In this document: one piece after another, positions 26,328 to 33,006 of the stretch
Position numbering within the stretch: position 1 is the stretch's first letter
Layout: the number at the start of each line of letters is the position of its first letter
NCBI RefSeq assembly: GCF_000143415.4
Contig: NW_003314284.1
Span: forward strand, 1,869,715-1,933,714
Source: Selaginella moellendorffii
Taxonomy: Eukaryota > Plantae > Lycopodiophyta
Reading direction: 5' to 3'
Length of the DNA stretch: 64,000 bases
Translations under genes and position numbers: made by a program
Notes under the pieces: model-generated
Seen by the model: only the letters and a program-made list of their open reading frames with translations
The model's database searches: none
Told to the model about the DNA's origin: nothing

Positions 26328-26686
26328 TGACGTGGCGGGAGAGGGACGTGGCCGCGGGAGATTGGAGAAGACCATGCTCCTAGGCGCCAAGCCCATATTC
26401 TCCCACAAATTGCCGAGATAGGAGAGAGAAGAGAGGAGAGAGAGAGAGAGAGTAGTAGTAGTGTTTATACAAGGTGATGCTAGAGCTAGAGATAGTGTGT
26501 GTGCTTCGTCGCTCGCGCGGCCTTGTTGAGTTGATCCACCGGGGAGGGGCCAAAATTCGTGTCAAATGCTGGTGGATTTGGATCCCGTGTAGTTAGATTA
26601 ATAGCCTTTGCTTTTCTCCGAGAGCTAGCTCGCTTTCGCGGAGAAGGATCATTGCGACTCATTGTAGGAGCCTAGCTCTATATATT
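26328..26686 (+). promoter_or_regulatory. Putative SHI promoter: two ACGTGGC (ABRE/hex-type) elements and a TATA box
   Basis: TGACGTGGC 26328-26336, GACGTGGC 26345-26352, TATATATT 26679-26686, followed by a (CT)n leader tract near 26822-26846. Confidence 0.4.
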
Positions 26687-27370
26687 AGAGCGGGAGCTTG
26701 ATCGATCGAGGGGGAGGTGAAAGGAGGAAGAACAGGAAGGAATCTCGCCGTCTTCCCGGTTCTGTGGAAAAAGAGAGGAAGAGAGTTCCAAAGCAACGCA
26801 AAAGCATCTTATCTTACACTTCTTTCTCTCTCTCTCTCTCTCTCTCATTTTGCTCCAAATTCGAGCTGGCTGATGATGATGGTGTTGGATCCCGACGGCT
26901 ACTCCTCGTCTTCATTCTCTTAGGTTGTCCGTCGTAGCAAAAGCTCCACCGGGAACAGTAGATGCCACTACTGCCACTGCTCCATGACGATCGCAGCGAG
27001 GTCATCCGTGACTGTGTGAGCTAAGTACGAGCACGACCGATCGGTGGCTAGGAGGAGCATCGATCGAGGAGGAGGCGAGGAAGATCGAGGAGATCCCAGG
27101 TGTTTCTCAGCTTGATGATACCGTGACGACTAGGGAGTCTACATGATCTACCGGGTACTCGACGAGAATTCGTTTGATCTTGGACCACGATATAGGAATT
27201 GCAGTGTTGTTCTTGGAGGTCGTGAACTTCTCCCCGTGAGATCGTCGTAGCTGGGCTACATAGCAGTAGTACTACCACTGCTGCTGCGCTGCTTGACCCG
27301 AGTTCTCTGGCAGCTCTAGATCACCGCGGCGAAAAGGAGAAAAAGAATTCTTTCGTAGCTCCCGGGCTGA

Positions 27371-29678
27371 ATTCCCTGCGATGGTCCGACGAGTCTAGCC
27401 CGACAAAGGAATCGTACCGCCGGGAGAGAGGAAGCAGTGCTCGCGGAGAGGGCGAAGCTAGCTAGAGAGATTGTTTATGCATTTCGATCAGCACAGGAGA
27501 AGAATCCAGCAGCGGTGGCGCCTGCTGTGGTGGAATCACGAACCGGCAGTAGCACCACCACCCGGGACTTGATCGGCGCAAGCAGCAGCGGCGGCGGCTC
27601 CTCTACTCCACCATGGATCGTTCCTTCCTCTCGAGATTGGCTGCTGGATCCCGGCGGCCCCGGCGAGCACGATCACCACGGGGGTGTCATCCAGTCCGCG
27701 GCGTCGGGCGCTGGCGGTAGCGATGGATGGGGCCGCGCGGTCGGCTATGGCTTCGTGGGGAGTCACCCCAGCCCTGGCGACGGCGGATTGGGGCCGGGAG
27801 GAGGTGGCGGTGGCGGGGGTGGTGATAGTGGCGGTGGCGCTAGCGGCCTCGGACTCGCGCCTCACCACCACCTCCATCTCCGCGACATCCTTGGCCGCGG
27901 GCCAGCGTCGGAGGAATTCGGATACCACCAGCAGCACCAACAGCACCAGCGAGCGAGCTTGCGAGGATCCAGCGAGCATGCGCACCACCATCACCACCAC
28001 CCGGGCGAGCAAGGCGGCGATCAGGGAGGACAGGGATCGCGAGTGGCGAGCTTCGAGGCGTACGAGACGACGCGCAATGTGGGAGGGATTGGGCTGCTCC
28101 GGACGGGGCTCGAGGCGGCGGCGGCGGCGGCAGCGGGCGGTGCGCCGGATCCCAAGTCGTTGGCGGATCATCCCCACCACCACCACCACCACCACCACGC
28201 GCCGTGGGCATCAGCGCCACCACCATCCGTGCGCGAATTGTCCGGTGCGCGGGGAATCGACGTGGTGCCGCTGGCGGAGCGCTTCTCCCTGGAAGCGGCG
28301 GCGGCGGCGGCGCAGGAGAAGAATCCTCATCCCCTCCAGCTCGTCCAGATCCAGGGCGGCGCCCAGCAGCAAGCACAGCAGAATCCCATCACCAGCGTCG
28401 CGCTCATCCAATCCCAGAATCCAAGCCCCTCGCAGCAGCAGCAGCAAGGCACGGATTCTTCGTCGTCGCGGCCTCACGGGCGCGGCCACCAGCCCGGCGG
28501 CGCGACGTGCAAGGAATGCGGCAACCAGGCCAAGAAGGACTGCCAATTCCAGCGCTGCCGGACGTGCTGCAAGAGCCGCAACTACGATTGCTCCACCCAC
28601 GTCAAGAGCACCTGGGTCCCCGCCGCCAAGCGCCGCGAGAGGCAGGCGCTCGAGGCGGCCGCCATCGCCGCCGGCCAGCCCCGCCCGAGATCCAAGCGCA
28701 CGAGATCCTTGGCGCTGGGCGGAGGATCCTCGTCCGCCGCCGCCCAAGTTGGCGGTGGGATGACCGCCAATCCTTCGTCGCTGCTGGGCCTGCCCGGGCC
28801 CTCGTCTCCCCGGAGCTCCGCGGATCTTCCAGGTTGGTCTCTCTCTCCCTCTCTCTCATTCCTCCATCTCTCCACTTCAGCTTTTTCTTCCATAGCCAAG
28901 CATGGTTTTGAATGATCGTGGATTGGATCCTTTCTCTTTGTTTGTGTTCTTGCGGCTGGGTTCGCAATCGTGATGGTTGGATTGAGTGCATGCGTGGGGA
29001 ATTTGGAGGCGGTGGCTGTGATCGTGAGGTTTGATTCGCCTGATGATAGAGGCAGCGCGCCCGCGCTGTCTCTAGTTATGACTGCATTCATGGATGCATT
29101 GGAATCCAGGAAAGCCAGGATCCGGGATTGTGATTGATTGATGGCTGCCTGGGCTTGATTGGATCGATCGAGAGCTCCCGAAGATATAGCGCTCGCCCGC
29201 TCGCTCGAATCTTGGCATTGCACCATCTTTTTTCTGCGATCTTAGAATGCCCGAGCGCTCTCTCGCTTTGTCGTTAACAAGCAACGTTGGTGACACAGTA
29301 TTCCTACCTTTGTACACTGCAGCGTCCAGTTACCGCGGCGTTCTACCGCCCGAGGTCCGCGCCCAGGCCCTGTTCAAGTGCGTCAAGGTGACGGGCATCG
29401 AGGATGGCGAGAACGAGTACGCGTACCAGGCGACTGTGAAGATCGGTGGTCACGTCTTCAAAGGCGTGCTGTATGATCAAGGCGTCGAGGCTCCCTCCGC
29501 CGCGGCTGCTGCTCCCGCGGCTGCTGCTCCGGGTGGTGTTGCTCACCAGGCCGCTCCCATCGCCGGGCTCGCGGATCTTCAGCTGGGAGCCAGCCGGAGT
29601 AGCATGCCTTCGAGCTCCGGGTACCTTGACCCCTCACAGATTTACGGCTCCACTACACTTTTCGGAGGTATGGCGTAG
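27371..29678 (+). CDS. SHI: SHI/STY/SRS-family transcription factor (RING-like zinc finger plus IGGH domain); start codon unresolved
   Basis: [46 protein letters not shown] from 28508; intron 28833-29322; [18 protein letters not shown] in exon 2. The start given is the first open codon after TGA 27368-27370; no in-frame ATG occurs until 28760. Confidence 0.93.
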
Positions 29679-30713
29679 ATTCCAGTCCCAACTCTTGCTT
29701 CTTTTTGCTTTTCTTCTTCTTGCTTTTCTTCTTCTTGCGTGAGTCGTGTTTCGTTTTCGATAGTTCTTTGCTCGAGTAGGTTCTCTTTAGCAATTGGTTG
29801 TGAGAGTTTTTGGAAGTGTAATTGCGTGGAGTTCTTGCCTGCTTTGAGTTGTTTGCTTGTGTAGAGTTCTCTGATTGAGATGGCTATTGTTTTTAGTTTA
29901 AGGTGGTGGTGGATAAAATGGTGTTACGCTTCCTTAGTGCTTGGAATGTTCCACGTTTTTTTTTTCGGTTTTTGCGTAGATCTTAGAAGATCTTAGAATT
30001 GTTTCGATGTTTTGCGAGGTGTTTGACTTGAAGCGTGCGTGATGTTTTCCTGGCTTTATTTTTTTTTTTCGAGCAGAGTTAAAATGGTTTTCTGGTGTAT
30101 TAGATTTGCTGGTTTTTTCTTCTGCATCGATCTGACTAGCGAAGTCCCAGAATTTGCAGCGCGGAACTTTTGCTGTTTTTTTTTAATCATTTTCCTGTCT
30201 TTTTTCTCTTGGATTTTGATGTTCCTGACGAACTTTGTCCCCTTTTTGCAGCCCTCCGCTGACTGCTAGAGGAGAAAACTTTCATACTCTCGACAAACAA
30301 TTGACACAGACTTACACCGAAAACCAGCTGCGACATTATTTACCTCTCGTTTTTCCTCCCCGAGTTCTCTCGTTCTTCCTCCCAAGAGCTCGGGAAGATC
30401 TCTCGGATGAGTCCTCGCGTGGAAGATCCAATCCATCTCTCAACTTTCCTCCATCTCATGAAAACGCTGCTCAAAATTTTGGATACATTGAGGAGCTCTT
30501 CTTCTACTATTGTACTTAGAAACTATTTGACCCCCCATACATAATTTTTTTCTGTTGTCCAGCATGCCAGGCCAGGGATCGAACTGGCGACTTGTCCTTG
30601 TATTCTCTCTTTCCACTAGTAGAGTTGTAGGTTAGGGTTTGGGGGATTTCGGTGGATGGAAGCGACGACATCCTGGTAGATCTTGCTCCAGGAGGGAAGA
30701 TCGATAGGCGCGA

Positions 30714-33006
30714 ATGGATCCGCAGCTGCATTTCCTGCTGGGATTACTATCATTGTGCTGCTGCTGCGCGGCTTTGACTCTCGGATCTGGCCGCGCCTTG
30801 CTTGATGCAGCTCACTCGTACAATGATGGCGATAAGGTGCCCCTGTACGCGAATAAAGTCGGGCCTTTCCACAACCCGAGGTATGGCTGGCGAGAGATCT
30901 TTCTTTTCGCTGCTAGATTTGAGAGCGAAGTAGTTCTTTGCTGGGAATTCTTTTCGTTTTCTGAGACAAAAACGTGGTTTTCTTTTGTTTTTCTTGTTTA
31001 GCGAGACTTATCAGTACTATGATCTTCCATTCTGTGCTCCCGCGGAGGTGAAGCACAAGAAAGAAGCCATGGGGGAGCTTCTTGAGGGAGATCGCCTGGT
31101 GTCCACTGTGTACGAGATTAACTTCAAGGAGAAGAAGGACGTGCAAAAGCTTTGCTCGGCAACTCTCGACAGGAAGGACAAGGAGCGGTTTCGCAAAGCT
31201 GTGGAGAATGACTATTATTTCCAGGTGACGGAACTGTTTGGTGACCCTTACTGATTTTCTACTTTGGCTTGTAGATGTTCTTCGACGATCTGCCGCTCTG
31301 GGGATTTATTGGAAGGTTTGAGCTCTTTGATAAACAAAAGCACTACATGCTGTTCACTCACGTCCACTTTGAGGTTCGCTATAACGGCAAGCGAGTGATT
31401 GAGATCGCTGTTTCTACAGACCCGGCTAAAGCCATCGACATCACGAATGACGATCCAGTCCCAGTTGACTTTACATATTCCGTCACCTGGGCCGAAACTA
31501 CTGTTCCATTCGAGAGGCGAATGGAGAAATACCAGAAGTACTCGTTTCTGCCACAACATCTTGAGATTCACTGGTTCTCTATCGTCAACTCGTGTGTTAC
31601 GGTTCTTCTGTTAACGGGGTTCCTGACTACGATTTTCATGCGAGTATTGAAGAATGACTTTGTCAAGTAAGTTCATCCATTGGTTTGATTTCCAGCTGAG
31701 CCTTGATCTTTTTTCTTGTTCTTCATCTAGGTACGCCAAGGAAGATGAAGAAGATTCGGACGAGACGGGATGGAAATATATACATGGTGATGTCTTTCGA
31801 TTTCCTCCTCATCCAAAGTACGTCGCGTCTTGTACATGAACTGAAGTCTAACGTTGTTTTTACGCTTCGCAGTGTTTTTGCGGCGGTCATTGGAAGCGGC
31901 ACTCAGCTCCTGGTTCTCGTCTTTTGCGTCTTCATGCTGGCCTTAGTGGGAGTATTCTATCCATACAACCGTGGCTCCCTCAACACGGCTTGCCTCATTA
32001 TATATGCGCTTACTGCTGGCATTTCCGGCTACGTCTCCTCCAAGTTGTACAGGCAAATGGGGGGAGATAAATGGGTAAGGCAAAATTGCTGTGACTTGGA
32101 AGCTCCTTCTCATGGTTGTTCTTTTCAGGTTCGGAATTTGTTATTGACAGCATCATTGTTTTGTGGGCCGCTGTTCTTAGCCTTTTGCTTCAACAATTCT
32201 GTGGCTATCGCCTACAATGCTACTGCTGCACTTCCCATTGGTACAATTCTTGTCATCACAATCATTTGGGCTCTCGTGACGCTGCCATTAACTGTGAGCG
32301 CCATAACTTGCCGTCCTAAACGTGTATTCATGAAGTACTTCCTTAGGTTCTTGGTGGAATCGTTGGCAAGAATAGCAAGGAGGAGTTTTATGCTCCTTGC
32401 CGGACAAATAAATTTCCTCGTGAAGTTCCATCCTTGCCGTGGTTTAGGAGGACTATTCCCCAGGTAAATACCATTACTTGGAAGACTCTCGGGGTTATTT
32501 ATCCGTGATCCCTTGCAGATGTGCATGGCAGGATTTCTCCCGTTTAGTGCAATCTACATCGAGCTTTACTATATATTTGCGAGTGTGTGGGGACACAAAA
32601 TCTACACGATTTACAGCATACTTTTTGTGGTGTTCATCATACTGATAATCGTCACGGCTTTCATCACCATCTCTCTGACGTACTTTCAGCTGGCCATGGA
32701 GGACCACACTTGGTGGTGGAGGTAAGAAGCAGTACCTGTCTATGCAAGCAGTTTCATACTGATTCTGTTGGCATGCATCGTGCCAGGTCCATTTTTTGTG
32801 GTGGCTCGACCGCTTTCTTCGTCTACGGCTACTGCTTCTACTACTACTTCGCCAGGTCTGATATGACCGGCTTGATGCAGACATCGTTCTACTTTGGCTA
32901 CATGGCATGTGTCTGCTATGGCTTTTTCCTAATGCTCGGTACTGTCGGCTATCAAGCGTCTCTCCTCTTTGTTCGACACATATACAAGGCAATCAAGTGC
33001 GAGTAG
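30714..33006 (+). CDS. Transmembrane 9 superfamily member (EMP70/TMN), multi-exon
   Basis: Signal peptide; motifs [39 protein letters not shown] and [16 protein letters not shown]; C-terminal IYKAIKCE (KxD/E motif). Confidence 0.96.

Follow-up and report, generated by a model that had tools for sequence, protein, structure and literature searches.

The SHI/STY transcription-factor gene in a 64,000-nucleotide (nt) stretch of Selaginella moellendorffii DNA, hereafter the window, probably begins its main reading frame at a near-cognate GUG codon at 27515 and not at an AUG (all coordinates are positions in the whole stretch). We hold with greater confidence, judging likewise from sequence comparison, that this GTG is conserved family-wide in vascular plants. 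A first-pass annotation had already proposed non-AUG initiation at this locus, naming four near-cognate codons, ACG 27389, GTG 27437, ATT 27470 and ATT 28088, all of which are present and in frame. Non-AUG initiation is supported and is the best reading of the locus, but the start that we favor was not on that list and the four named codons are unconserved in relatives.

A SHI/STY frame with no AUG before its zinc finger

The locus is a three-exon gene of the SHI/STY/LRP1 family (DUF702). Searching Pfam exon by exon, with the exons left unjoined, we found DUF702 in the exon 1 translation at residues 377-434 of the frame counted from 27371 (nt 28499-28672, E = 7.9e-29), and its IGGH domain (..KIGGHVFKG..; E = 1e-22) 3' of the zinc finger on exon 2. 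The finger is of the RING-like C3HC3H type (CxxCGNxAKKDC...RCRTCCKSR...C.TH), with columns that are invariant in our alignment A1. As the first-pass annotation had noted, no in-frame AUG precedes it: the TGA at 27368-27370 is followed, from 27371 onward, by 463 open codons that include no ATG, and the first in-frame ATG, at 28760, lies past the CxxC...C core of the finger (28508-28642). Unspliced, the frame reaches its first in-frame stop at 28913. Exon 1 is 100% identical to the S. moellendorffii protein XP_024534506.1, which NCBI labels 'partial'. A protein starting at GTG 27515 would have about 565 residues, or 557 with an alternative acceptor.

The ATG-less region has a G+C content of 68%, compared to 47% across the window, and we roughly estimate that an ATG-less stretch of such length would arise from composition with a chance of about 2%, which is unusual but possible. 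We regard the feature as more than chance because the orthologues have it too.

Could the missing ATG instead be an artefact or a sign of decay, arising from a hidden frameshift or a pseudogene, or could translation yield only a short protein that begins at ATG 28760? ATGs 27477, 27613 and 27723, listed in the first-pass annotation, are indeed there and out of frame, and the frame with ATG 27723 is open for 346 codons. Both haplotypes are present in the S. moellendorffii assembly, so we aligned the second one (L008, GL377576.1) to the window. Neither haplotype has an in-frame ATG. Within 27371-28832 they differ by about a dozen single-nucleotide polymorphisms and by two indels, one of 3 nt and one of 6 nt; in the flanking non-coding DNA the indels measure 7, 12, 10, 2, 2, 11, 5, 2, 13 and 1 nt, and only the 12-nt indel is a multiple of three. 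Because the haplotypes, assembled independently, share this ATG-less frame and have only 3- and 6-nt indels in it, we reject the assembly frameshift that the first-pass annotation had kept in view as a way of bringing ATG 27477, 27613 or 27723 into frame. The segment 27371-27514 is identical between the haplotypes and is therefore uninformative about coding there. As for the 346-codon frame, its length is expected at 68% G+C, and its product, an Arg/Ser/Thr-rich filler lacking homology, was rejected as a candidate; it is the main frame that encodes the conserved N-terminal motifs as well as the zinc finger and the IGGH domain. Given that orthologues from ten other lineages have the same ATG-less layout, we consider artefact or decay very improbable.

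The GTG site and the onset of coding constraint

We compared 11 sequences at the GTG site, the window and ten relatives ranging from liverworts to angiosperms. The relatives are the genome of Diphasiastrum complanatum (L014); two vascular-plant mRNAs (L001-L006 and L007); a fern-like mRNA (L013, 63% identical to Adiantum); a conifer-like mRNA (L011/L012, 68% identical to Cryptomeria); the genomes of Marchantia polymorpha (L009), Riccia fluitans (L016) and Calypogeia fissa (L015); and LRP1-type mRNAs of a eudicot (L017) and a monocot-like plant (L018). L001-L006 are six independent assemblies from one species; between -300 and +150 they match, save that one assembly has two mismatches.

All 11 sequences have the GTG, with a purine at -3 and G at +4, and in none of the 11 does an in-frame ATG intervene between the GTG and the closest in-frame stop 5' of it. 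The nine non-angiosperm sequences, window included, read GTG GCG CCN GCN GTG; the wobble position varies in the Pro and Ala codons and never in the first GTG. In the two angiosperm mRNAs, GTG GCT heads the same collinear motifs. Mature mRNAs from six lineages (L001, L007, L011/L012, L013, L017 and L018) carry an in-frame stop 12-63 codons 5' of the GTG, and their first in-frame ATG lies 67-284 codons past it; the corresponding distance in the window is 415 codons.

Coding signatures (in-frame indels, third-position bias and homology) begin at the GTG, liverworts excepted. Peptides 5' of the V are unrelated between lineages, and homology runs from V-A-P-A-V onward. Between L001 and L007, the indels 5' of the GTG are of 11, 8, 1, 4 and 2 nt, the last of them at -17, and all nine indels 3' of it are multiples of three; in the 15 nt that remain, the GTG is the only in-frame start-like codon common to both. 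From the GTG to the first ATG, differences at the first, second and third codon positions number 17/14/41, 27/25/91 and 23/14/43 in three pairs, and the ratio of non-synonymous to synonymous substitution rates (dN/dS) is 0.20 and 0.12 in the two pairs with unsaturated dS. These patterns indicate that the stretch is translated and under purifying selection. For the window itself, hhalign aligned the N-terminus to a profile of the seven other non-seed sequences over SRDWLLD..GYGF with E = 3.7e-6.

Protein models look different at this site depending on how they were called. We fetched 38 motif-bearing proteins. In 27 of them, all annotated models, the site is occupied by an internal V, preceded by unrelated, arbitrary N-termini. 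An internal M never occurs there; M appears only as residue 1 of bacterial-style open reading frame (ORF) calls, and the four such calls that we checked (4/4) have a GTG codon. For example, the apparent start 'M-APAVAG' of relatives from Logan RNA sequencing data aligns with 'V-APAVVE' of the window, and the codon in the DNA is GTG. Because bacterial start rules print GTG as M in P0007, P0012, P0016, P0023, P0048 and P0052, the site had resembled a normal Met start.

The conserved N-terminal domain that follows the GTG (27515-27754) has no Pfam family; the sole Pfam match is DUF702, further 3'. A profile of this domain searched against 1.84 billion representatives gave five matches, four of them previously collected, with no moss or hornwort member among them, and a search of the N-terminal region with P0007 gave three. 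In L017 (GTG at 363) and L018 (GTG at 744), 67-69 conserved codons (ATTRR..PSD.GAFADW, DLSLGFN, NYG) come before the usual MGMVGLRD.

The first-pass annotation had read a repeated peptide, AQEKNP, as hinting at translation of the far N-terminus. The peptide is doubled as described, but its first copy (27491-27508) lies upstream of the start that we infer, where relatives are free of coding constraint, so the hint is unsupported. The nucleotide repeat beneath it, CAGGAGAAGAATCC, has its first copy 8-21 nt 5' of the GTG; a related RAAATCC motif is found 19-36 nt 5' of the GTG in L001, L007 and L011, in differing frames.

Evidence against the GTG and rival upstream starts

Several observations weigh against a start at GTG 27515. 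Four codons on, a second GTG shows the same invariance across the non-angiosperm sequences, so an invariant codon does not by itself decide the matter. The S. moellendorffii frame is open for 48 codons 5' of the GTG. No conserved downstream hairpin of the kind that favors near-cognate starts emerged: RNAalifold gave only a 7-pair stem of -3.7 kcal/mol with no covariation, and single-sequence folds of +1 to +60 have z-scores of -2.1 to +0.9 against shuffles. Searching S. moellendorffii transcript-derived ORF fragments with 27371-27904 returned none, a result that is silent on shorter or longer sequences. Short collinear motifs are what links the angiosperm to the non-seed N-terminal domains, and the link is statistically weak in hhalign (E = 0.003, probability 11%); the angiosperm GTG is nevertheless supported by evidence independent of that link. 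The remaining points of this kind concern a 5' intron and the liverworts, and are taken up with the rival starts to which they belong.

If a 5' intron were removed from the mature S. moellendorffii mRNA, an upstream AUG would be the start and would place a short, species-specific extension before V-APAV. There are three versions of this: ATG 27143 with 27235 joined to 27497, as in the Joint Genome Institute (JGI) model; ATG 27143 with 27218 joined to 27400, as in the NCBI model; or ATG 26962 with 27015 joined to 27497. Both published models of the other haplotype (P0121 and P0122) start at ATG 27143. A canonical GTGAG...CACAG intron at 27236-27496, identical to that of the JGI model, puts this ATG in frame 18 nt before the GTG, and the ATG, GT donors and AG acceptors are intact in the window. 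In Diphasiastrum, for which the sequence is genomic only, an AG lies at the same -19 distance from the GTG, and the close upstream stop in that species could be intronic.

Against this, NCBI removes 27219-27399 and JGI 27236-27496, and NCBI left the window haplotype 'partial'; since the two pipelines' introns differ and one model is partial, neither choice looks driven by evidence, and both look like ways of securing an AUG. Within the putative exon region a single difference separates the haplotypes, and it alters the amino acid (27234 C/G, Pro/Arg in the JGI frame). The context of ATG 27143 is poor (T at -3, A at +4), six other ATGs come before it, the extension that it would add lacks homologues, and an upstream in-frame AUG is present in 0 of 6 mature mRNAs from other lineages. 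We therefore judge a spliced AUG start unlikely, and the GUG start the better account of the site.

Initiation might also occur at another near-cognate codon 5' of 27515, namely ATT 27470, GTG 27437 or ACG 27389. The frame is open from 27371, ATT 27470 has a good context (A at -3, G at +4), and in liverworts coding-like conservation reaches 5' of the GTG. However, no relative conserves these codons or the peptide that would result; in the six mRNAs a stop closes the frame 12-63 codons 5' of the GTG, and between L001 and L007 the frame breaks at -17. A start at one of these codons in S. moellendorffii thus seems quite improbable.

In liverworts, 89-164 codons are open 5' of the GTG and resemble coding sequence, with in-frame indels and differences biased to the third codon position (27/21/42). 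The liverwort GTG may be internal, with a start further 5' that would still have no AUG in its open frame. Marchantia and Riccia share 90% nucleotide identity from about -170 to -50 of the GTG. The liverwort leader (L009:4190-4409, L016:3890-4120 and L015:4200-4413) is conserved and ATG-free; one block of it, CGACAAGAA.C.TT.TTC..GGGTTC.CA, is common to Calypogeia too, and Marchantia has a second APAVA-like motif 66 codons 5' of the GTG. This leader could be translated from yet another non-AUG start, or it could be an RNA element under conservation. In R. fluitans (L016:4121-4408) the frame breaks in a G-run after the N-terminal motifs, which is probably a homopolymer assembly error; model P0024 splices around it.

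The features of the locus are collected in Table 1. Intron 1 has a second in-frame acceptor 24 nt on, between 29322 and 29323, and NCBI's upstream choice adds VFLPLYTA; homologues leave the choice between it and the acceptor between 29298 and 29299 undecided. Further 5', a TATATATT box (26679-26690) and a (CT)n tract (26826-26846) lie about 830 and 680 nt 5' of the GTG. If transcription starts in this region, the leader would be about 700-800 nt long with about nine upstream ATGs, similar to the ATG-rich leaders of 690-1160 nt in L001 and L007. Scanning 26400-28000 with Rfam gave microRNA-like matches only, all below threshold. The window has 21 GGATCC sites, 8 of them inside 26580-29118 (2.5 kb of the SHI locus, 4% of the window). 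The next gene 3', on the same strand at about 30700-33000, is of the EMP70 family (PF02990), as called on the other haplotype (L008:6545-8837).

Table 1 Features at the SHI/STY locus, in window coordinates.
Feature	Position	Strand	Basis
Hypothetical AUG-bearing 5' exon (rival start)	27143..27235	+	P0121 (NCBI) and P0122 (JGI) start MIYRVLDE..
Hypothetical 5' intron, GTGAGA...CACAG	27236..27496	+	deduced from P0122/P0121 against the window; NCBI alternative intron 27219-27399
Closing in-frame TGA	27368..27370	+	frame translation
48 open codons 5' of the GTG, putative untranslated leader	27371..27514	+	no homology to the matching stretches of relatives
Out-of-frame upstream ORF, 31 codons, weak context ttgtttATGc, overlaps the GTG	27477..27572	+	ORF reading
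14-nt direct repeat CAGGAGAAGAATCC, two copies	27494-27507 and 28313-28326	+	exact match, 0 expected by chance
Putative GUG initiation codon, context gcagcgGTGgcg, G at -3, G at +4	27515..27517	+	comparison of 11 sequences; homology and frame constraint start there
Conserved N-terminal domain: V-APAV, SRDWLLD (27629-27649), third motif (27725-27754)	27515..27754	+	alignments A1, A2, A5
Putative coding exon 1, GTG to donor CAG/GTTGGT	27515..28832	+	sequence, NCBI model
First AUG 3' of the GTG, out of frame, strong context ccaccATGg, 35-codon ORF, likely ribosome sink	27613..27720	+	ORF reading
RING-like zinc finger, N-terminal part of Pfam DUF702	28499..28672	+	E 7.9e-29
First in-frame ATG, past the zinc finger	28760..28762	+	ORF reading
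Intron 1	28833..29298	+	NCBI models P0001 and P0121 use the acceptor between 29298 and 29299
Exon 2 with IGGH domain (C-terminal part of DUF702, about 29340-29489)	29299..29667	+	E 1e-22
Exon 3, C-terminal ..G-ALR, TGA 30260-30262	30252..30262	+	NCBI model ..FGALR; relatives P0007, P0012 and P0006 alike

Predicted initiation, gene models and known non-AUG systems

On the reading that we favor, a scanning 43S complex would initiate at GUG 27515 with low efficiency, the codon being read as methionine by the initiator tRNA. Most ribosomes would pass the GUG and reach the out-of-frame ATG 27613 and then further out-of-frame AUGs. Inefficient initiation together with capture at these AUGs would keep output of the full-length factor low, and this output may depend on factors that set start-codon stringency. 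Because the next in-frame AUG lies past the zinc finger, the GUG would be the sole route to a DNA-binding product in Selaginella. For the family as a whole we lean, with less assurance than for the S. moellendorffii codon, towards the idea that the LRP1-type SHI/STY branch has kept a GUG start, and never an AUG, since before liverworts and vascular plants split. The GUG would act as a translational throttle on a regulator linked to auxin biosynthesis, or as an isoform switch where an in-frame AUG follows. In the literature that we searched, no paper ties SHI/STY/LRP1 to non-AUG initiation, and none bears out the proposal of such a start in moss SHI genes to which the first-pass annotation alluded; a Marchantia paper that uses the MpSHI promoter is silent on the start codon.

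Many published SHI/LRP1 models probably have an N-terminus that is truncated or carries a spurious extension. The MpSHI model (P0017, 276 residues) takes as its start the earliest AUG in a frame with 361 open codons 5' of it (L009:3918-5486). It leaves out 197 conserved codons that follow the GTG (position 4410 in L009), such that the reference protein lacks the N-terminal domain AV-APAVAGGGG.., DW, LKERDLSLGF, SFVAYVGGE. For Cryptomeria and Taxus, the annotated start is a Met ('MAVGGML') that lies inside the frame of the conifer mRNA, and the usual angiosperm LRP1 start, 'MGMVGLRD', is 67-69 codons 3' of the GTG. In the Calypogeia model, a two-residue upstream exon was added that gives a Met. 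Many NCBI models from legumes, Malvaceae, Lamiales and Lonicera reach a Met through upstream sequence that is unrelated.

If the GUG start is correct, it would account for the 'partial', truncated or arbitrarily extended N-termini that annotation pipelines produce, and the protein models of this much-studied developmental family would need correcting in Marchantia, Selaginella, conifers and probably angiosperm LRP1. The references for MpSHI (276 residues), conifer SHI and Arabidopsis-type LRP1 (MGMVGLRD) would be missing a conserved domain of 67 to about 200 residues, so far uncharacterized, and constructs built from the annotated AUGs would test a truncated protein. The family would also offer a clean system for asking why a GUG, one transition away from AUG, persists for hundreds of millions of years.

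With published members of its own family (SHI/STY/LRP1 or SRS, Pfam PF05142, including Arabidopsis LRP1, MpSHI and moss PpSHI1/2), the window gene shares the RING-like zinc finger and the IGGH domain, in the same order and split by the same intron. Its N-terminal motifs (DW, D-x-SLGF, YG) follow the same order as the motifs 5' of the annotated start in angiosperm LRP1-like genes. In contrast to the published proteins, which start at an AUG, it has no in-frame AUG before the zinc finger.

Plant nuclear genes whose main ORF starts at a non-AUG codon include Arabidopsis AGAMOUS (ACG) and FCA (CUG). Like the SHI gene, these are developmental regulators with conserved N-terminal coding sequence that lacks an in-frame AUG and with a putative start at a near-cognate codon in good context; they differ in that the SHI codon is GUG, that its conservation extends from liverworts to angiosperms, and that the SHI start is a prediction from sequence. 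Among animal genes, eIF4G2/DAP5 starts only at a GUG and the long isoform of c-MYC is initiated at a CUG. The literature describes 5MP proteins as restricting non-AUG starts. What these genes have in common with the SHI gene is a conserved near-cognate start that AUG has not replaced through long spans of evolution; this suggests that inefficient or regulated initiation is selected for. As with c-MYC, long and short isoforms are possible where an in-frame AUG follows, as in angiosperm LRP1 and Marchantia. The animal genes belong to unrelated families, however, and in Selaginella the product of the downstream AUG would lack the zinc finger. To our knowledge only a handful of plant main ORFs with non-AUG initiation have been documented, and few are conserved so deeply. 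Plant regulators with non-AUG starts are thus already known, and what sets the SHI case apart is the depth of its conservation and its consequences for annotation.

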